DNA of 64,000 nucleotides from Adineta vaga (taxonomy: Eukaryota; Animalia; Rotifera). This document shows positions 30,644 through 51,375 of the stretch, one piece after another. Location of the stretch: positions 11,842,001 to 11,906,000 of the forward strand of contig CP075493.1 in the NCBI GenBank assembly GCA_021613535.1, given 5' to 3'. Positions within the stretch are counted from its first letter, which is position 1, and every line of letters begins with the position of its first letter. A program made the translations under genes and the position numbers. The notes under the pieces were generated by a model. It did no database searches, had not been told where the DNA came from, and saw nothing but the letters and a program-made list of their open reading frames with translations.

Positions 30644-32338
30644 ATGAGTGATCCAACAACAAGATCTTCGTCATCATCAGCAGCAAAAAAGCCACCTACA
30701 CTTGATAGTATCCTACGATTATGTGGTGATCTTGGACTCTATCAATTTATACATATTTTCTTTCTGAATCTCATTTCAATGAGTGCCGGAATGGTTGCTT
30801 TCTATTATGTATTTGGTGCAGCTGATCTTAATCATCGATGTCAATTGCCATCGTCTGTATGGCCAAATGATGTGCACTATCAAGCATTTAATCAAACACA
30901 TGAAAATTTGATTACTGCTTACATTCCAAAAGATAAAGATGGCAAATGGGACAAATGTATGCGCTATACAACAAATAATCGGAGTCGAACACTAGTCAAC
31001 TGCCCTAATGGTTGGGCATATGATCGATCTGTTTTCGGTTATACATTTACTGAAGAAGCTGATCTTGTATGTCGCCATGAACCGAAGAAAAGTTGGGTAT
31101 CTACATTGATGCAAAGTGGTGGTTTTTCATTAGTTATCATCGGTTCATTAGGTGACAAATTTGGACGAAGGAGAACAACAATTATAACAACTGTACTTTT
31201 GTTTATACTATGTATTATTACACAAATCTTCATGCAATGGATTCCAATGTCAGTAAATACAAGGTAAGTTGACGAATTTGATTGGAATTGTCTTTGCTAT
31301 TGTATGTCTTAACTTGATAGGTTTGCTCTCTTACTAGTCAATCAGTTAATATCTGGTTTGACTGTTTCAACATATAGTATGGCTTTTATTCTTATGCTCG
31401 AATTAACATCGGCAGCTCATACAAGTCTCGTTGGAAATACAGCACTCATTTCTTTTACAATTGGTGAAGCAATTTTGACTCTTTTTGCTTATCTGACACT
31501 TGATTGGCAAAAACTTAAATGGGCTACTACAGTTTTTATTGGTTTAGTTTTACCGTATCTGTATTTTATACCCGAGACACCACTTTATCTTTATTCTAAA
31601 CGGCAATATACTGCACTCGAAACAATACTACGTCGAATTGCTACAGTAAATAAACGCAAAGAAATCGATTGGTATCCATCGTATGAAGAACTTGTGTGTA
31701 ATCAATCGCTTGTCGAACTTAACATAGAAACTAAGACATCATTTAGAAAAGAAGTTCGTCAACTTTTTTCACATAAATCGAGTCTTATTAAACTATTAAT
31801 TACATGTTTTCTCGGTTTCACAACATATATGCTTTACTATGAAATAAGTTATGATCTTGAAGTCATTAATATATCACCCTATCTTGGTGTTCTTATTGGA
31901 GCGGTTGTTGAAGCGATTGGTTACATATCAGGTTCTGCACTGATCGTAACACGACTTGGTCGTAAAGGTACATTTGCTATTATGATGAGTCTTACTGCAG
32001 TATGCATTTTAATTATACCATTTATTGTTAAACACAATGCTATTGGTACTATACTTGTTGCACAATTAGGAAAATATGCTGTATCAGGAGCAATTGCTGT
32101 CTCTTGGATATTCATACCTGAACTTTTTCAAACATCAATTCGAAGTACTGCCAATGGACTTTTCATTACTTTTAGTCATCTTGGAGCTATCATTGCACCA
32201 GTGATTAATACTTCTATTAGTGACGAATATTTACCTATCACATTTTATGTATCATCAGCTTTAGCCGTGATTGTTCTCTTGCTAACTATGATACTACCAG
32301 AAACAAAAGATAGAACAATGGATGATGAACAAGATTAG
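30644..32338 (+). CDS. SLC22-like transporter, paralog of 19730-21498, one intron (~31264-31320)
   Basis: GDLGLYQ, YDRSVFGYTFTEE, GDKFGRRR, PETPLYL, ELFQTSIRS and LPETK motifs. Confidence 0.9.
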
Positions 32339-38527: not shown

Positions 38528-41500
38528 ATGACAACTTTGTCAGGACCCGAACGAACTGATCTTTTCAAAGATGAACTTCTTCATGATATTTTTATTCAGA
38601 CAGCACGACGTTTTCCTGATAAAGTCGCTCTTCGTTGGCAAAATGATGAAATTATGTATAGTCAACTCTATCAACGTGCATCGCATTTAGCTCTTATCTT
38701 ACAACAAACAAAAAATATTCGTACCAATGATCGAGTAGGTATCTGGTTATCACGTTCAGCTCAATTACATGTCACAATACTTGCTGTTTTGATGACTGGT
38801 GCAACGTATGTTCCATTTGATGCTGATGTGCCACAAGAACGTGTCAATGAAATACTCGATGACTTACAAATTGTAGTTCTTCTCATCGATTCTCGTATTT
38901 CAATAAGACATCCATTGGCATTTAATGTTCAACATTTACATGAAGATTTATATATTAACGGTAGTATTGCTCAAATAAGAACAGATATTCATAGAAATCT
39001 ACCAGCTTATATCATTTGTACTTCGGGTTCAACTGGAAAACCTAAAGCAATTGCTATCAGTCACCGAAGCATCTGCCATTTTGTACGTGCCGATAATGAA
39101 ATTATGCAAATTAGATATGAAGATATTGTTTATCAAGGTTCATCAGCTGCATTCGATATGTTTCTTGAAGAAACGTTTCTTTCGTACTCTGTTGGTGCAA
39201 CACTTGTTATCCCGTCAAAAATGGACATTCTAAATAGTGATAAACTACATCAGTTCTTTATTCATCATTCTATTACGGTATTATTTTGTGTACCAACATT
39301 ATTACTTCTTATGCATAACGATCCAGCACTCAAACTTCGTCTTATCAATACTGGTGGTGAAGCGTGTCCACAGGTATATAATATAGATTAGATTATCCAT
39401 ACATTGGAAAATAATTCATTTAGACACTAGTTGATCGATGGTGGAAAGAAGATCGATTGATATTCAATTCTTACGGTCCTACTGAAATAACAGTTGCAGC
39501 TACAGTTCAATCTCTTCGTCCTGGACAACCAATCAGTATTGGTGTTCCCTTACCTAATTATGTATGTTGTTTACTCGATGAAATGACTGGCCAGCCAACG
39601 TTTGAAAATACCGGTGAATTATGTATACATGGACCAGGTGTTGCTCTGGGTTATATTAATCATCAATCATTAACAAAAGAAAAATTTACTAAATATGGTT
39701 ATCGTACAGGTGATCGTGTGTCAATTCAAAATGGACAAATCTTTTTTCATGAAAGAATTGATTCTCAAGTCAAACTTCGTGGGTATCGTATGGAACTTGA
39801 TGAAATAGAACAAGAATTAGTTCGATTAGAAGATAAAGTTGTATCAGCTGTTGTAACTGTTCTTAATGAACAATTAATTGCTTTCGTTGTTGGTCATTTA
39901 AATGAATCACAAATGCGTGAAGAACTTCGACAAAGATTACCTTCGTATATGGTACCAGATCGATTAGTAACAATTGACGGCGCAATGCCTCGTTTATCGA
40001 GTGGAAAGATCGATCGAAAAGCTATCGCTGCTCTTCTATTAAAAGATGATATTGACAAATCGAAATCTACAATAATAGAACTTGATTCGGGTAAGATAAT
40101 TATGTTCGTATAATGTATTTTATGTTATATCTATTTCAGTAAGAAACAATTTCAATGAACAGAATGATAATCGGCAACCACTTGACGTTATTCTCAGTGT
40201 TTTTCAAAAGAGTTTTGTACATCAACAACCAAAAGCAAATGATGATTTTTTTATTGATCTTGGTGGTCATTCGCTGATTGCGACACTGACGATAACTGAA
40301 CTACGTAAATGGTTCCATGGTATTGCTCTACATGATTTGTATGAATGTAGAACTGCCACTAAACTCGCTGAACGTTTAACAAATTTATTGAATGAGAAAA
40401 AAGACGTGAAAAGTTTAAAACTTTCTATTCATTTTGTCAAACCATCGTATACGAGAATTATTCTCTGTAGTCTATATCAAGCACTCATAATTCTTATTCT
40501 TAGTGGTATAGCGTCACTTGAATTCATTCTACCGTATATTATATTTATTTTATTTTTACGCGAAGATAATATTGGCTATGCATGTCTCGCTGCTTATGGG
40601 ATATTTGTTATTGTGCCTGTGTTTCGACATATTTTGTCACTGACAGCAAAATGGTTTCTTATTGGTCGATACGAAGAAGGTGATTTTCCATTGTGGGGTT
40701 GGATGTATGTTCGATGGTGGACTGTCGAAAGATTACGAACTCTCGCTATGCCTTCGACTCTAGCTGATAGTCCATTGATGAGTATTTATTATAGACTGTT
40801 TGGTGCTAAAATTGGTCGAAATGTTCATCTTGGTTCCATTAATTGTGAGGCTCCTGATCTTTTAGAAATTAATGATGAAACAACTATATCATCAGAAGTT
40901 CATTTTCAGACTGCTTTCGTAGAAGATTATACATTAAAATTTCGTCGCATTTATATTGGCAAAAATAGTTATATCGGTAGTCGTAGTGTTATAAGCGGAC
41001 GAACGAAAATGAATGAGTATTCGGAATTGCATGATTTCTCTTTTCTTCCCCCTAACACATGTGTACCTGAACATGAAGTTTGGCATGGGTCACCAGCTAT
41101 TTATTCGCATCATGCTGATTTAACAGCGCCACTACTGCCTAACAATTCAATGCACATGAAATTTACATCTATCGGAAGTACGATAATTTTTGCAATAATT
41201 ACTCTGCTATTCATGCCATTGTTCCATTTCATTCCAATTATTCCTGGTCTACTTCTTTTCGAATATATTGATATAAAATCTATAGACAATACACTGGAAG
41301 TCTTTATCTTCTGTCCATGTGTTGGAATTCTATATACATGTTTAGTAATTATACAAATTATTATCATTCGTTATTTGATTACCAGAAAGCTGGAAGTAGG
41401 TGTTTACAGTACAAAATCATTAATATATATACAAAAATGGCTATTTGATCGAGTTCTGGAAGCTGCCTTGCATGTTATGCATACGTTTTATGCGACTCTC

Positions 41501-42565
41501 TACATGGTACCTTTTCTTCGTGTATTGGGAATGAAAATTGGTCGACATTGCGAAGTATCAACAGCAATAGGAATGATTTATTCATTAATAGAAATTGATG
41601 ATGAATGTTTCATTGCCGATAATGTTCTCCTTTGTGAGCCATATATTCGGTACGAGCAGATACATTTGGAAAAAACAACTCTTGGTAAGCGTGTTTTTAT
41701 CGGAAATTCAGCAATCATTCCTAATGGAAAACATATACCGAATGAATGCTTAATTGGATGTATGTCATTGTTAGCAGATGAATTACTAGAAAAGCAATCA
41801 TGTCTAGGTTCGCCTGCCTTCATCTTACCAAATCGAGAACACGCTCCAGCTGGCACGTTAGAAATTTCGACATATCGACCAAGTACAGGAATGATTGTTC
41901 AACGTTTATGTATCGATACAATACGTATATTTTTACCAAGAACAATTATCGTTTTGGAAATTGGTCTAGCTACTGAAATTTTCGATCATTTTAATCAATT
42001 AATTAATTTTAGTTATTGCTTACTTACATTACCTATTTTATATATAGGTATACTTGCATTACCATCTTTACTTTTCTGTATTTTACTCAAATGGATATTA
42101 ATGAGAAAATATCGAACAAATCATTATCCTTTATGGAGCTGGTTTGTTTGGATATCAGATTTTATCACGGTAACATTCGAACAGTTGACTGTTCCACTTA
42201 TTCTAGATTTTCTTCAGGGAACTTACTTTATAGCTCCAGCTTTACGTTGTTTTGGTGTAAAAATTGGTCAACACTGTTTTGTTAATTCCATTCAAATAAC
42301 TGAATTTGATTTAATCAATATTGGTGATCAAGTTGTAATAAACACGGGAGCAGAACTACAAACTCATCTTTTCGAAGATCGTGTTATGAAACTGGGAGAG
42401 ATTCATGTCGAGAATCAGACAAATATTGGTTGTTTATCAACTATGTTACCAAATACACGATTAGGATCGAGTTCAAAACTAGGTCCATTAAGTTTAGTTA
42501 TAAAAGGCGAAAATATTCCTCCAAATACTTCATGGCAAGGTATTCCAATTCGAGAATATAATTAA
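38528..42565 (+). CDS. Pls/PosA-family single-module NRPS-like homopoly(amino acid) synthetase (A-T-TM/terminal domains), 3 exons, ~1312 aa
   Basis: Exons 38528-39373, 39424-40090 and 40140-42565 splice in frame. A-domain motifs (TSGSTGKPK, AFDMFLEE, NTGGEAC, NSYGPTE, YRTGD, QVKLRGYRMEL, SGKIDRK), T domain DDFFIDLGGHSL, then three TM-hairpin plus GAKIGRNV/GMKIGRHC/GVKIGQHC units ending QTHLFEDRVMK...WQGIP. Confidence 0.93.
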
Positions 42566-42953: not shown

Positions 42954-43973
42954 ATGTCAGCTCTCGATGCAAACGCGGATGTGATTCTATCATGGAATAC
43001 AGCATCTGATATTCTCAATCGTTATTTTCCAATCGTTATCTATGTTTTTGGTATAACTGGCAATGTCTTAAATATTTTGGTTCTTATTCAACGACCACTT
43101 CGTTCAAATCCATCTGCTATTTTCTTTATTTGCTCATCGATAGCTGGTCTTCTTGCTATTATAAGTGGTTTAACAACACGAATGATGGCTGGATATGCAA
43201 CTGATATGACAACAACAGTCGGATGGATTTGTAAAATGCGTAATTTTGTTTTATATAGTGCTAGAACAATAACTCTATGGTCAATTGCATTAGCTACAAT
43301 TGATCGATGGTTAGCATCGAGTACCAATGTATCTAGACGACAAACGAGTTCAATAAGGAATGCTCGACGAAGTGTAGTCCTTGTTCATATCTATGCGTGT
43401 GTTATCAATAGTCCAATACTTTATTGCTATGAAGCTAATCTGAGTGATGCTCTTCGTGGATGTTATGGTTTAACATATATTTGTCGTTTGATTACCGATC
43501 TTATATATACAATCATGACCACATTAGTACCATTATTAATGATGATTATTTTCGGATTGTTGACTATCAGACATGTACGTCATACACAGAATCGTATTGA
43601 AAATATAACGATGGTTGACATGAGTTATAAGAATAAGAATACATTACCAACGTCGACTACTCGTGAAAGATCAAAGAAAAAAGTCGATAAACATTTATGT
43701 AAAATGCTTACTGTACAAGTAACTCTATTTGTAATACTAACATGTCCACATGGTATTCAAAAATCTTATTCATCCATCATATCATCGAATGAACCATCAT
43801 CTCAATCATTGAAAAATGCTGTCGAAACTTTTATTTTTAATTTAGTTACTCTTCTAAATTTTACAGCAAGTGGCATACCATTTTATATTTATACATTAGC
43901 AGGTGGTAGTTTATTTCGAAATACATTGTTTCATCTTTTGAAAAGAACTATTCTAAAGATCTTCTGTCGATGA
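42954..43973 (+). CDS. Class A 7TM GPCR, intact, intronless
   Basis: GITGNVLNILVL...RSNPS, WICKMRNF, ATIDRW, and PFYIYTLAGGSLFR motifs. Confidence 0.9.
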   Translation: MSALDANADVILSWNTASDILNRYFPIVIYVFGITGNVLNILVLIQRPLRSNPSAIFFICSSIAGLLAIISGLTTRMMAGYATDMTTTVGWICKMRNFVLYSARTITLWSIALATIDRWLASSTNVSRRQTSSIRNARRSVVLVHIYACVINSPILYCYEANLSDALRGCYGLTYICRLITDLIYTIMTTLVPLLMMIIFGLLTIRHVRHTQNRIENITMVDMSYKNKNTLPTSTTRERSKKKVDKHLCKMLTVQVTLFVILTCPHGIQKSYSSIISSNEPSSQSLKNAVETFIFNLVTLLNFTASGIPFYIYTLAGGSLFRNTLFHLLKRTILKIFCR

Positions 43974-44989: not shown

Positions 44990-47101
44990 ATGGGTCAAGG
45001 TTGTTGTAAAACGAATACAATAAACTCGTCTAGTACAGTAGTAAATAGCTTCAACCAACAGGATACTGTCATCAGTCAAAGAATAAATCTTTTCGTAACC
45101 GATGTTGGTTTCTTTGGACAAGCTATACCTTACATTATGGAAAATTTTACTCTAGTATGGTTTGATCCAGATATCAACATGATCGATACAGAAACGAAAA
45201 CGTATATAAAAGATTTTCGACGAATAATTAATTCCATTCAAATCTTTACTGATCTTTTCGAGTGTTGTAAATATGCTCTTGCAGTGAAAGATACTCAAAT
45301 GATTCTTATTGTTTCGAAATCATTCAAACAAGACTTTGCCGAAATGTTTTTTATGATGAAAGAACTTCGATCAGTCTATATTTCATCGAAAAATATATCA
45401 ACATCTTTGGAATCAAATCAATTCAGAAGTAAAATGAAAGGTACGTTTAACGATATACAGGGATTATCTAGTACAATAAAAGATGATATTTATCGATTTG
45501 AAAATAATCAAATACCAATCGATGTTATTACATCAACAACTTTAATTCAACTGATGGAAACTGAACCAAAATTTTATTATTCAATACTAATTAAAGAGAA
45601 TTTATATGAAAAAGGACAACGTTTTGAACAAGGAAAACAAGCATTTATTGATTCTTGTCGAGTTTATTATGCTAACAATGATGAACAAATAGAAGTAATC
45701 AATGAATTTAACGATAAATATGCTCTTTCAACATCGATATGGTGGTATACACGTGATTGTTTCATCTCTCGAATATTGAATAAAGCATTCCGAATTCAAG
45801 ATTTTGAAACAATAATTAAAATGAATTTTTTCATTCGTAATCTTCATCGACAAATTGAACAGGTCTATTTAGAAACAATTCCACATTGTCAAATAACGAC
45901 TTATCATAGTCAAGGTATCACACATGCTATATTAGAAAAACTCAAACATAATAAAAACAATCTTATTTCTTTCAATACATTTTTATTGACGAATACAAAT
46001 CGTGATCTTGCTCTTAACATGGCTCGTCATCTTCAAGAAAGTAATGAATTAATAAGTATTCTCTTTCGAATCACAATCGATCCATCAATTTCACAAACGC
46101 CATTTGTTACCTTGGATGGAATTGCTTATTCACAAGAAATGCAGAATAGAATATTATTCTCATTTCAACCCATTTTTCGCATTGGTGAGATGAACAAGAA
46201 TGATAATAATATGTTCGAAATTGAACTCACTTTAATTGATCATTATGATGAGCAAATGAAAGATTTTATTAGACATAATCTAAAACCAAATGAAACAAAC
46301 CCAGGATTTATTCAAATAGGAACATTGATAAATGAGAAAGGTGAACTCGATAAAGCTGAAAAGATATTTACTGCATTACTTCAAACAACATCTGACAAGT
46401 ACAAAGAAGGACTGTTGATTTGCCATCTTCGATTAGCGAAGATCAATTTAGATAAAAACGATTTACAAGTCGCATTGTTGCATTTTCAAAAATCGATTAC
46501 CATACTCTCCATTGTTTTTTCAGCAGATGATCGTCAACTAGCATTACCATACGATCAGATGGGTCTTATCTATCAACGACAAGGTGATGATGAAAATGCA
46601 TTAAAACATATGCAAATAGCTCTCAAATTAGAAGTTCAAGGGCTTGAACCTATGCCTTTACATATTGTACAAATTCTCGAAAATATCGGTTCAGTATACC
46701 AAAATCAACGTAGGTTGACTGAAGCTTTGATATATTACAAGCGTGCACTTCAAATTGCATTAGTTTACATATCATCTGATTATCTGATGTTGAGTACTAT
46801 TCATAATAATATTGGTGTAATGCATCTATGGATGAAAAATTATACAGATGCGCTTTCGTATTTTGAAAAAACTCTTGAAATTCAAAACACACATGTTTCA
46901 TCGGATCACAGATCATTGGCCACAAGTTACAGTAACATGGCACTAGCACTCGATGGTCTTGATCGTACTAACGAAGCTGTGGAATATTCTGTAAAAGCGG
47001 TTAATCTCGCATGCCGTATATTGGGGTTCAACCATCCTGATACTGACTCTTATCTCTGTCAACTAACAGAACTACAGAGTAAAACGAGGCACCGGATCTA
47101 A
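44990..47101 (+). CDS. ADP-ribosyltransferase-like domain plus TPR repeat protein
   Basis: LVWFD N-domain, IWWYTRDCFISRILNKAFR, LISFNTFLLT, ILFRITID and IFRI segments, followed by ~6 TPRs. MGQGCC N-terminus. Confidence 0.85.
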   Translation: MGQGCCKTNTINSSSTVVNSFNQQDTVISQRINLFVTDVGFFGQAIPYIMENFTLVWFDPDINMIDTETKTYIKDFRRIINSIQIFTDLFECCKYALAVKDTQMILIVSKSFKQDFAEMFFMMKELRSVYISSKNISTSLESNQFRSKMKGTFNDIQGLSSTIKDDIYRFENNQIPIDVITSTTLIQLMETEPKFYYSILIKENLYEKGQRFEQGKQAFIDSCRVYYANNDEQIEVINEFNDKYALSTSIWWYTRDCFISRILNKAFRIQDFETIIKMNFFIRNLHRQIEQVYLETIPHCQITTYHSQGITHAILEKLKHNKNNLISFNTFLLTNTNRDLALNMARHLQESNELISILFRITIDPSISQTPFVTLDGIAYSQEMQNRILFSFQPIFRIGEMNKNDNNMFEIELTLIDHYDEQMKDFIRHNLKPNETNPGFIQIGTLINEKGELDKAEKIFTALLQTTSDKYKEGLLICHLRLAKINLDKNDLQVALLHFQKSITILSIVFSADDRQLALPYDQMGLIYQRQGDDENALKHMQIALKLEVQGLEPMPLHIVQILENIGSVYQNQRRLTEALIYYKRALQIALVYISSDYLMLSTIHNNIGVMHLWMKNYTDALSYFEKTLEIQNTHVSSDHRSLATSYSNMALALDGLDRTNEAVEYSVKAVNLACRILGFNHPDTDSYLCQLTELQSKTRHRI

Positions 47102-47588: not shown

Positions 47589-49817
47589 ATGTTGCGACAG
47601 CAGTTTTTAGGTACTCTTGATTTGCAAATCAGCATTCCATTATTAACCAATTATGATGCATGTATTGAAGCGAATCATGATCAAAAGTGGAAAATCATCA
47701 AACATCAAGATGATCTATTGTTAATGGAATTAGAAAGCTTGCTTAGTTCCAATGAATGTAAGGAGCTTCTAGATCATCTTCATCGAGAAACATTCGAAAA
47801 TATGTCAGAAAAATACGTCACTGAACAACGAAACAACTCAAGATTAATCGCGGTCGATAAGAAATTAGCTGATCTTCTCTGGCAACGTTTAAGCTTTGAC
47901 AATCAATTTAAAGAGTTTGTACAAGATACAAGGCCATTAGGTTTCAATGTTCAAGGTCAATGGAAATTGAGTGGTGTCAATCCTGCTATGCGACTAAATA
48001 AATATCAAACCAATCAACATTTCTCACCACATAAAGATGCACAATATGCTCCCAGTGGTGACGAACGATCATTGTTTAGTTTGATTATTTATCTTAATGA
48101 TAATTATGAGCATGGTCAAACTAAATTCTATTTTCCAAAACAAACGCCAACATCAGATACGAAAGGATTAACAATACAAGAAGAAATCAATGCTTATGGT
48201 GGATTACAAAATGGATATGAATGTGTTACTATTCAACCAAAGAAAGGTTATGCTATTCTATTTACACATAATCTTTTACATGAAGCTGTGGCACCACAAG
48301 GAATCGATGCAGAACGATTTGTTCTTCGAAGTGATGTCCTTGTTAAACGAGAAGAAAAAGAATTAGGTTTTGCAGTTTGTGCAGAAGAAGAAGAAGATTA
48401 TTTTGCATGTCTGAATTTCTTTCGTGAAGCACAACAAAGAGAATTAGACAAATCAATGGATAGTGGAGAACTGTATGAACGATCATTATCGATTCGATAT
48501 TGTTATCCACGTTTACTTCAATCCAAAATGAAACAAACTATTGTCGAAGAAGAAGAAGAAGTATTAATTGATCGATTGCCGTCAGAAATTTGGCTTCATA
48601 TTTTTGGATATGTTCATGAACAAGATATTCGAAATTTCGTATTTGCTTATCCACAATTTCAATTGTTGAAAATATTTTGGGAAGCAAAAGAAAAACAACA
48701 TTTAAAGAGCGATCCATATCAACCAAAATTTATTCCAACTATCCATGTGCAATATGGCAGTCGAACATTATTTCGTTTTTCGGATGCTGATTTCTTCTAT
48801 CAACATGTCAATGCATGTTGTCGTGTTGCAGCTGTCTATGCTTTCTTTCTACTAGGACACAGCAAAGATTCTCAAACATATACTGTTCGATATGATCGAA
48901 ATACTCAACAAACTTGTGAAGTTAATATGGAACAACTCTTAGCAGATGCATTCTATAATCGAAATTGCTATGGTTCATTATATCGTGTTAAACAAAAAGA
49001 TGAAAATAAACGAGAACCAATGATTGATTTAGATCATAGTGTTGATCGAACATATATGACCAATCGACATCAGTCACAATTTATTGGACAAGATCTATTA
49101 CCGAATCTGCATCTTATATTAGAAAATCACCAATTATCTGAATTAGATGGACATAACAGAGGAAAATATGAAGATCACTTCAATGAACAAGAATTTCTTG
49201 CTTGGCAACGTAGACATGCTCTATATGATCGAAATGAAAAACTTGTTGATGAATATTTGAATGCTAATACACATTTAACTTATCGTGCACAATGTTCAAA
49301 AGATTCTGTTCTTGGTTTTCGTGAACATGTATTCAATCAAATCGAAAATAAATCAGGTACGAGTTTGTTTCGAATGCTTTCGGCTAAAGATCATGTTATA
49401 TATGGATTCTGTGATTGTCCTGGATGTTATTATCAAATTTATACAGTTCAAGATTTAATTACTATTTATAACCATTTAATATTTGACTTTGATACACATC
49501 GATTAGCAATTGAACATTTAGCTGATGAATCGTCTTGTGAAGATTTTAATTCTCTTCTATATGATTGTGTTCAAATACTACAAGACAAAGTTCCACAAGA
49601 AAATCCTGTTTCATTCTATCGTGTCAATATTGAAAAATTAGCTGAAGTAACACAAGGATTCAATCATGCTGGATGTCAATGTCAATATCCAACTGTAAAA
49701 GTGAATCAATTTTCATTTCTTGATTACACTTATTTATCGCATGTTCATTTGAGTGTTGCTCAAAATAATGAACATGTCTATGTTCTAGCTACCTATGGTG
49801 GAATCGCTGTTTTGTAA
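47589..49817 (+). CDS. 2OG-Fe(II) oxygenase (prolyl-hydroxylase-like) fused to F-box-like motif and unknown C-terminal domain
   Basis: MRLNKY...FSPHKDA, SLIIYLND, LLHEA and RFVLRSDV (HxD...H...R) motifs, plus IDRLPSEIWLHIFGYV F-box-like segment. Confidence 0.85.
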   Translation: MLRQQFLGTLDLQISIPLLTNYDACIEANHDQKWKIIKHQDDLLLMELESLLSSNECKELLDHLHRETFENMSEKYVTEQRNNSRLIAVDKKLADLLWQRLSFDNQFKEFVQDTRPLGFNVQGQWKLSGVNPAMRLNKYQTNQHFSPHKDAQYAPSGDERSLFSLIIYLNDNYEHGQTKFYFPKQTPTSDTKGLTIQEEINAYGGLQNGYECVTIQPKKGYAILFTHNLLHEAVAPQGIDAERFVLRSDVLVKREEKELGFAVCAEEEEDYFACLNFFREAQQRELDKSMDSGELYERSLSIRYCYPRLLQSKMKQTIVEEEEEVLIDRLPSEIWLHIFGYVHEQDIRNFVFAYPQFQLLKIFWEAKEKQHLKSDPYQPKFIPTIHVQYGSRTLFRFSDADFFYQHVNACCRVAAVYAFFLLGHSKDSQTYTVRYDRNTQQTCEVNMEQLLADAFYNRNCYGSLYRVKQKDENKREPMIDLDHSVDRTYMTNRHQSQFIGQDLLPNLHLILENHQLSELDGHNRGKYEDHFNEQEFLAWQRRHALYDRNEKLVDEYLNANTHLTYRAQCSKDSVLGFREHVFNQIENKSGTSLFRMLSAKDHVIYGFCDCPGCYYQIYTVQDLITIYNHLIFDFDTHRLAIEHLADESSCEDFNSLLYDCVQILQDKVPQENPVSFYRVNIEKLAEVTQGFNHAGCQCQYPTVKVNQFSFLDYTYLSHVHLSVAQNNEHVYVLATYGGIAVL

Positions 49818-50580: not shown

Positions 50581-51375
50581 ATGGAACAAGAAATTGTTAA
50601 GATCAATAAAAAGTTTAAAAAAATGATTGATAAATCTGAAATGGATGAATGTGTTGCTAGAGCATCACTTGTTCGTCTCGAAGAGTTAAATATTTCATTA
50701 ATGGTTTTGCAGAAGACTGGTATTGGGAAAACCATTAACGAACTACGGCGTGGTACGAACAATGAAAGTGTATCGACAATGGCTAAGAACTTGTTAAAAA
50801 AGTGGAAAAAACTTCTTTCTAGTCCATCTCAACTAAAATCTTCTCAAACAACCACTACGACTACAAACTCTTCATGGGAAACAAATGATGCAACAAGACT
50901 GAAATCACGCGAATTGTTAGCAAGCGCATTGTCGATTATGGGAATTCCCGAAGGTTCAAATGATCCGGTTGAATTATCTGCTCGCATTGAAGATGCTGTA
51001 TACAAAGAAATTAAAGATACGAAAATTAAATATGGACGTCGTATCCGCAGTCAAATATTCAATTTAAGAGATTTGAGAAATCCTGATCTTCGCACCAAAG
51101 TACTTCTCGGTAGTATTACACCAGAACGATTTGCTATGATGACTACCGAAGAAATGACTAGTGATGCTTTGAGAGAGGAATGTGCGAAATTTAAAGAAAT
51201 ATCTCATCGTGAAAGTCTATTGGCAGTCGATGAAGGCGTCGGCAGTGATCTTATTCAATGTGAACGATGTAAACAACATAACTGTTCATATTCTGAACTT
51301 CAAACACTCAGTGGAGACGAACCAATGACTTTGTTCGTTCTATGTAGAAACTGTGGTTATCGATGGAGAGGATGA
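50581..51375 (+). CDS. TCEA: Transcription elongation factor TFIIS (TCEA-like), intronless
   Basis: LQKTGIGKTIN...LLKKWKKL domain I, RIRSQIFNLRD...NPDLR domain II, and Zn ribbon CERC...QTLSGDEPMTLFVLCRNCGYRW. Confidence 0.93.
   Translation: MEQEIVKINKKFKKMIDKSEMDECVARASLVRLEELNISLMVLQKTGIGKTINELRRGTNNESVSTMAKNLLKKWKKLLSSPSQLKSSQTTTTTTNSSWETNDATRLKSRELLASALSIMGIPEGSNDPVELSARIEDAVYKEIKDTKIKYGRRIRSQIFNLRDLRNPDLRTKVLLGSITPERFAMMTTEEMTSDALREECAKFKEISHRESLLAVDEGVGSDLIQCERCKQHNCSYSELQTLSGDEPMTLFVLCRNCGYRWRG

Follow-up and report, generated by a model that had tools for sequence, protein, structure and literature searches.

The stretch of Adineta vaga DNA analysed here (contig CP075493.1 of assembly GCA_021613535.1, positions 11,842,001 to 11,906,000 of the forward strand; 64,000 nucleotides, termed the window) carries on its plus strand, at window positions 38528-42565, a gene that encodes a full-length, single-module synthetase of the Pls/PosA family, microbial membrane enzymes by which diamino acids are linked into antimicrobial cationic polymers. 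It is a genuine, integrated A. vaga gene, and on the strength of homology its product is probably a membrane-bound enzyme that would work by the mechanism of its microbial relatives. What is new is the presence of this known family in an animal host, in the form of a full-length, intron-bearing member that is conserved across species, duplicated and equipped with a distinctive substrate pocket.

Direct reading of the DNA gives three exons separated by two GT..AG introns, all on the plus strand. Exon 1 (38528..39373, 282 codons, residues 1-282) encodes the N-terminal part of the adenylation (A) domain, with the A3 motif TSGSTGKPKA and pocket residues D210, M211, E214, F253, N274 and G276. It is followed by intron 1 (39374..39423, 50 nt, phase 0) and by exon 2 (39424..40090, 667 nt, ending in phase 1), which covers residues 283-504 plus the first base of codon 505 and completes the adenylation domain with the YGPTE motif, pocket residues S298, V306 and A307, and the A10 lysine K477. 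Intron 2 (40091..40139, 49 nt, phase 1) leads into exon 3 (40140..42565, residues 505-1312 and the stop codon), which holds the carrier domain and the entire terminal domain. The spliced frame of 3939 nt, or 1312 amino acids, is uninterrupted, and each exon frame, if left unspliced, meets a stop a few codons inside the intron. The public annotation contains the same gene model under the name 'hypothetical protein' only: GenBank entry UJR16975.1 (locus tag I4U23_003873, Adineta vaga, 1312 aa) matches each of the three exon products at 100% identity and runs unbroken over the first junction. Together, the DNA reading and this identity confirm the two introns and the reading frame of about 1312 residues proposed in the preliminary description of this DNA, and both introns are presumably spliced out in vivo. 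In what follows the exons were searched separately, and whole-protein analyses used UJR16975.1.

A Pfam scan of the three exon products (E <= 0.01) identified AMP-binding on exon 1 (8.5e-47) and exon 2 (5.3e-15), as well as AMP-binding_C and PP-binding, and found neither a PF00668 condensation domain nor a thioesterase domain. TIGR01733 also matched exons 1 and 2. The thiolation (T, PP-binding) domain lies at 40232..40378 (+) and contains the motif DLGGHSL (40256-40276), in which Ser549 (40271-40273) would carry the phosphopantetheine arm. The A and T domains without condensation or thioesterase partners, and the serine within GGHSL, are thus as first described.

The remainder of exon 3 is occupied by the Pls/PosA terminal (polymerisation) domain (40475..42550, +), supported by TIGR02353, a structural model and fold matches. 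The NCBIfam model TIGR02353 matched exon 3 from position 2 to position 695 of its 695 positions with a score of 512.2 bits, against a curated cut-off of 423.1 (E = 2.1e-153), and a six-frame genome search gave the same result for the gene; the C-terminal half therefore matches the Pls terminal domain along its full length, as had been suspected. Hydropathy analysis revealed six hydrophobic 19-mers arranged as three pairs, predicted to be transmembrane, and together with the model this places the pairs at 40457..40624, 41183..41368 and 41927..42085 (all +), ahead of the beta-helix domains C1, C2 and C3, respectively. The AlphaFold2 (AF2) model of residues 590-1312, built from a 44-sequence alignment, has a predicted local distance difference test score (pLDDT) of 91.7 and a predicted template modelling score (pTM) of 0.90, and consists of a unit of a long helix pair, short helices and a left-handed beta-helix that occurs three times over. 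The best Foldseek matches in the PDB are galactoside and maltose O-acetyltransferases of the hexapeptide type, each covering approximately one third of the model. A PDB sequence search with the terminal domain returned no match, the copy searched containing no solved Pls/PosA terminal domain. The modelled three-fold repeat agrees with the C1-C3 beta-helix pseudo-trimer published for the family (PMC10522769).

The motif QTHLFEDR, near-invariant in the family as QxHLxEDR, lies in C3 (residues 1245-1252, 42359..42382, +). The preliminary description had three terminal units ending in this motif; the three units of transmembrane pair and beta-helix stand, whereas the motif occurs once, in the third unit only. 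Retention of residues was assessed at the 99 alignment columns with an identity of 97% or more across 166 full-length members from outside the bdelloids. Of these columns 93 are unchanged in the rotifer protein, including 42 of the 44 that fall in the terminal domain, and the invariant columns of the 44-sequence alignment agree with this result. Overall, the TIGR02353 match, the domain order, the hydrophobic pairs and the AF2 model uphold the original assignment to a Pls/PosA-type architecture.

The gene has close relatives elsewhere in the genus. Two A. steineri sequences are 75% and 68% identical to it, and an A. ricciae sequence is 66% identical. A. vaga itself carries a second canonical Pls/PosA gene, I4U23_000171, on the minus strand near the chromosome end (contig C1:880858-885431, at 0.88 Mb). 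Its 1310-residue product is 50% identical to that of the window gene, scores 508 bits with TIGR02353, and has its own ortholog in A. ricciae; its introns, of 461 and ~190 nt, occupy the same positions. Several AT-rich metagenome contigs also encode relatives of 57-60% identity that are split into the same three pieces. One metagenome locus, L014 (JGI metagenome 3300049216, contig Ga0495313_0020358; GC 0.37), holds a relative of 60-72% identity with gaps of ~1.2 kb and 0.37 kb between the exon pieces, and probably stems from an unsequenced bdelloid in the environmental sample. Both intron positions, after residue 282 and inside codon 505, are common to the A. steineri ortholog, the A. vaga paralog and L014. 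Because gene and paralog have these positions in common, the introns predate the duplication. Acquisition of the gene is older than the divergence of the Adineta species and than the duplication that gave the two paralogs, and both introns were in place by the time of that duplication.

The wider family was collected by an exhaustive profile search that yielded 553 cluster representatives at E <= 1e-30, among which identity to the rotifer protein never exceeds ~39% outside the bdelloid-like group (fungi 36-38%, bacteria 35-38%). Trees were inferred under LG+G4 from 64 sequences and under LG+C20 with posterior mean site frequencies (PMSF) from 29, and were rooted with lysine-type (Lys-type) sequences (P0076, P0083, P0100 and P0106), which lie outside the branch with the rotifer gene. 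In both trees the bdelloid sequences are monophyletic (support 100) and form two subclades, and their sister is a fungal clade of ascomycetes and basidiomycetes, with Shimodaira-Hasegawa-like approximate likelihood ratio test (SH-aLRT) values of 99 (LG+G4) and 93 (LG+C20 PMSF). Beyond these two clades come a bacterial metagenome pair and then Granulibacter, the whole being nested inside a bacterial grade. The gene is ultimately of microbial origin.

The trees do not decide between a fungal and a bacterial direct donor. Transfer from a fungus, eukaryote to eukaryote, is a strong contender that falls somewhat short of even chances. It is favoured by the fungal sister clade in both data sets and by the cost of forcing the bdelloids together with the nearest bacterial pair (7.2 log-likelihood units; approximately unbiased (AU) test p = 0.044), although this last value is marginal. 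Moreover, the stems are long (0.69-0.89 and 0.36-0.51) and the composition is heterogeneous, conditions that invite long-branch attraction; fungal identity is no higher than bacterial identity; and no intron position was found in common between the bdelloid genes and those of Mollisia or Botryobasidium. Two independent acquisitions from related proteobacteria-like donors would fit equally well. Of the earlier suggestion of a domesticated bacterial gene, therefore, host integration and microbial origin are retained and the bacterial donor is left undecided.

The substrate pocket was read from an alignment of 101 homologs, each of at least 1150 residues, and the columns chosen reproduce the published codes of Botryobasidium (DIESIGTVTK), other fungi (DMENNGTVTK), Bacteroidota (DMEHNGSV[TS]K) and the Lys type (DAESIGTVVK). 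The window gene and both A. steineri sequences give the code DMEFNGSVAK, and the A. vaga paralog gives DLEFNGSVAK. Asp at position 1 contacts the alpha-amine and Glu at position 3 the side-chain amine in all characterised members (PMC10522769), and both are present in the rotifer pocket as D210 and E214. Compared with the code of the ornithine (Orn) enzyme PosA, DMEHNGTVSK, seven of the ten positions are alike, namely D1, M2 (chain length), E3, N5, G6, V8 and K10, whereas the Lys-type code DAESIGTV[VI]K is not matched. Consistent with this, the best single-domain PDB match of the A domain is PosA (8G95, 6e-83), with Pls (7WEW) at 9e-61. The pocket is therefore predicted to be ornithine-like and not lysine-like; the monomer is uncertain because positions 4 and 9 are bdelloid-specific. 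The code D[ML]EFNGSVAK occurs in no non-bdelloid member whose pocket was read, the nearest being the bacterial DVEFNGTVAK. This latter code belongs to P0095, from a bacterial metagenome-assembled genome (L016:8001-12017), which has Phe 4 and Ala 9 as in the bdelloids and lies far from them in the tree, suggesting that the pocket arose convergently.

If the enzyme works as its homologs do, the A domain would adenylate a cationic diamino acid whose alpha-amine is held by Asp210 and whose side-chain amine is held by Glu214, with Met211 favouring a chain of ornithine length. A thioester bond would then join the amino acid to the phosphopantetheine arm on Ser549. The terminal domain, with its three transmembrane pairs and its left-handed beta-helix domains assembled as a pseudo-trimer, would move the acyl group repeatedly to the side-chain amine of a free acceptor and so build an isopeptide-linked polycationic homopolymer. 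The arm itself could be attached by the product of one of two loci elsewhere in the genome. No phosphopantetheinyl transferase (PPTase) gene adjoins the rotifer synthetase gene, and a genome search for one, a check that the preliminary description had called for, found two intact PF01648 loci with open frames of 293 and 298 aa (L020, C2:8650604-8650870; L021, C5:9958259-9958495), which are candidates to activate the carrier domain. In the bacterial loci L016 and L019, unlike the rotifer locus, an ACPS-type PPTase gene lies directly 3' of the synthetase (L016:12145-12735; L019:11906-12559, 4-nt overlap); L019, which belongs to the bacterial pair nearest the bdelloid and fungal clades, also contains ABC-transporter and OprB genes.

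Enzymatic activity, an ornithine-like monomer and a biological role are what we infer from this comparison. The antifungal activity of delta-poly-L-ornithine, together with the fact that fungi attack bdelloids, makes an antifungal or antimicrobial role plausible. A broader proposal, put forward tentatively and with rather less than even confidence, is that bdelloids produce an isopeptide-linked polycation that resembles delta-poly-ornithine or consists of a monomer new to the family, with an antifungal or protective function, and that the radiated terminal domains described below point to a class of animal polymers or conjugates assembled at membranes.

These divergent terminal domains are encoded at no fewer than ten further A. 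vaga loci (L003-L012 and other places on contigs C1-C6), where TIGR02353 scores are 92-134 bits, below the cut-off. They are 21-24% identical to bacterial Pls/PosA, and a search with one such locus found relatives only in bdelloids (Adineta, Rotaria and Didymodactylos) and in similar metagenome contigs, so that they look like a bdelloid-specific radiation. Fusions to methyltransferase, condensation or spermidine-synthase-like (PABS) domains are frequent in this family. At one locus (L009:1-2628, C5:2.48 Mb) the Pls-like terminal domain is preceded by an adenylating domain whose best score is that of a fatty-acyl-CoA ligase and not of an amino-acid A domain.

Several observations weigh against the reading of the window gene as an active polymer synthetase. 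All bdelloid copies have Phe at pocket position 4 and Ala at position 9, where PosA has His and Ser313, and in this they differ from every characterised enzyme in Table S2 of PMC10522769; in PosA the S313A mutant is 183-fold less efficient, while the residue at position 4 makes no contact with the substrate (PMC10522769). The Orn-type code, DMEHNG[TS]V[ST]K, has a hydroxyl residue at position 9. In addition, none of the four bdelloid sequences has the two glycines that at least 97% of the 166 other members carry at the positions of residue 174 (A3, GKPKG to GKPKA) and residue 392 (A8, GR to ER, DR or QR). With the drift in the pocket, these changes mean that activity and monomer could differ from those of the known enzymes. 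Among the sequencing runs searched, the locus was covered only by four runs from one 2013 study, which are DNA because their contigs cross both introns without joints, and the runs presumed to be RNA contained next to none of it. The variants in those 2013 runs (19 synonymous, 18 non-synonymous and 3 non-coding) indicate weaker constraint than the comparison between species described below. Finally, product, localisation and membrane topology in a eukaryotic cell are predictions.

The pocket and glycine changes would also fit an enzyme that is active but makes no diamino-acid homopolymer, either because it uses another substrate or because it transfers the acyl group to another acceptor such as a lipid, a polyamine or a short product. 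The presence of Pls-like terminal domains fused to other modules elsewhere in the genome shows a domain that has been reused, and points the same way. This alternative is nonetheless unlikely, since D1 and E3, which are diagnostic of cationic substrates, are retained together with Met at the chain-length position, and since the terminal domain keeps all but two of its invariant residues and scores well above the equivalog-domain cut-off. A homopolymer-forming synthetase is thus the preferred reading.

The near 1:1 ratio of synonymous to non-synonymous variants and the lack of RNA evidence could instead suggest a relic of horizontal transfer that is now without function, either silent or in decay. 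The near-absence of the locus from the runs presumed to be RNA is not evidence of silence, and the non-synonymous share in the 2013 runs is still below the ~3.5:1 expected from site numbers. Against the A. steineri ortholog, dN/dS (Nei-Gojobori, calculated exon by exon with the split codon 505 left out and the counts pooled) is 0.14, 0.15 and 0.19 for the three exons and 0.17 overall, at a dS of 0.71. This value, far from the dN/dS near 1 that decay would produce, bears out the earlier view of an intact gene under purifying selection. The 1312-codon frame is open after splicing, three Adineta sequences have one and the same pocket code, 93 of the 99 invariant residues are kept, and both paralogs are retained in several species, all of which makes a relic very improbable. 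A lookup of A. vaga expression through PMC10809525 was set aside, as the FUN_ identifiers used there do not match the I4U23 locus tags (FUN_000171, for instance, denotes a natterin-like gene).

The gene is a genuine chromosomal gene of its host and not a contaminant, as judged from its third-position GC content (GC3), its conserved introns, its metazoan-type neighbours, the low dN/dS and the retained residues. Although the great majority of the family is microbial, contamination from a bacterium or fungus, or a false join in the assembly, can be dismissed for practical purposes: the spliceosomal introns occupy conserved positions, the GC3 of the gene (0.15-0.21) equals that of its neighbours (0.17-0.30) and is far from the total GC of the loci of its nearest bacterial (0.66-0.69) and fungal (0.50-0.57) relatives, the locus lies mid-chromosome among metazoan genes (C1:11.84-11.91 Mb of the six-contig, 100.8-Mb genome), orthologs are present in three separately assembled Adineta genomes, and the independent 2013 DNA runs cover the entire locus at even depth with allele-like differences.

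Downstream of the synthetase gene are intact open frames for a rhodopsin-family seven-transmembrane G-protein-coupled receptor (42954-43973), a tetratricopeptide repeat (TPR) protein (44990-47101), a 2-oxoglutarate-Fe(II) oxygenase-domain protein (47589-49817) and TFIIS (50581-51375), and a major facilitator superfamily/sugar transporter is found in two pieces as open frames at 30644-32338. The animal-like setting noted in the preliminary description is borne out by these neighbours, by the GC3 match and by the naming of UJR16975.1 as an A. vaga protein. The many broken neighbours that it also reported were not seen within ~10 kb of the gene, where the receptor, TPR, oxygenase and TFIIS frames are all intact. 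Synteny with the A. steineri locus was uninformative, amounting to one weak TPR match (22-26%).

Cationic homopoly(amino acid)s, among them epsilon-polylysine and delta-polyornithine, are known from microbes and fungi. An active rotifer enzyme would make bdelloids the first animals shown to produce such a polymer, and the distinct pocket code marks the enzyme as a candidate for a new monomer specificity. The antifungal nature of delta-poly-ornithine would tie such a product to reports that acquired biosynthetic genes are deployed against pathogenic fungi. Full-text searches for literature linking bdelloids or rotifers with polylysine synthetase or non-alpha poly-amino acids (NAPAA) found nothing relevant. 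Homologs in 'Metazoa' are noted in PMC10522769, the table of which lists only Nematostella, without analysis.

Among known systems, the horizontally acquired nonribosomal peptide synthetase (NRPS) and polyketide synthase (PKS) genes of bdelloids (PMC11258130; PMC10531068) resemble the present gene in host group, foreign origin and proposed antimicrobial role. The surveys that described them relied on a PF00668 condensation domain, as the bdelloid NRPS/PKS study did, or on NRPS calls by antiSMASH, and missed this gene because a three-domain screen that demands a condensation domain excludes Pls-type genes; neither that study nor the survey of animal NRPSs mentions Pls or polylysine. The fungal homologs (for example those of Aureobasidium, Mollisia, Rhynchosporium, Botryobasidium and Tilletia) are, like the rotifer gene, eukaryotic and intron-bearing and form its sister clade in both trees, and most carry the Orn-like code DMENNGTVTK. 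They differ in their modest identity to the rotifer protein, in the positions of their introns, and at pocket positions 4, 7 and 9. The characterised fungal case is the Epichloe epsilon-polylysine synthetase (PMC7179176), which is not among the sequences compared here.

Pls of Streptomyces albulus (PDB 7WEW) has the same domain architecture, a TIGR02353 terminal domain and, as far as can be predicted, the same iterative isopeptide mechanism. It is set apart from the rotifer protein by its code DAESIGTVVK, by the weaker A-domain match and by the position of Lys-type sequences, chosen as the outgroup, outside the rotifer branch. PosA of Acinetobacter baumannii (PMC10522769; PDB 8G95-8G98) comes closer, since it combines the A-T architecture followed by three repeats of a transmembrane pair and a left-handed beta-helix with membership of the same large tree branch, which holds DMEHNG-type codes. 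The rotifer protein is ~35-38% identical to the bacterial members found and, unlike PosA, has Phe, Ser and Ala at pocket positions 4, 7 and 9 in place of His, Thr and Ser313; its gene resides, with two spliceosomal introns, in an animal genome.

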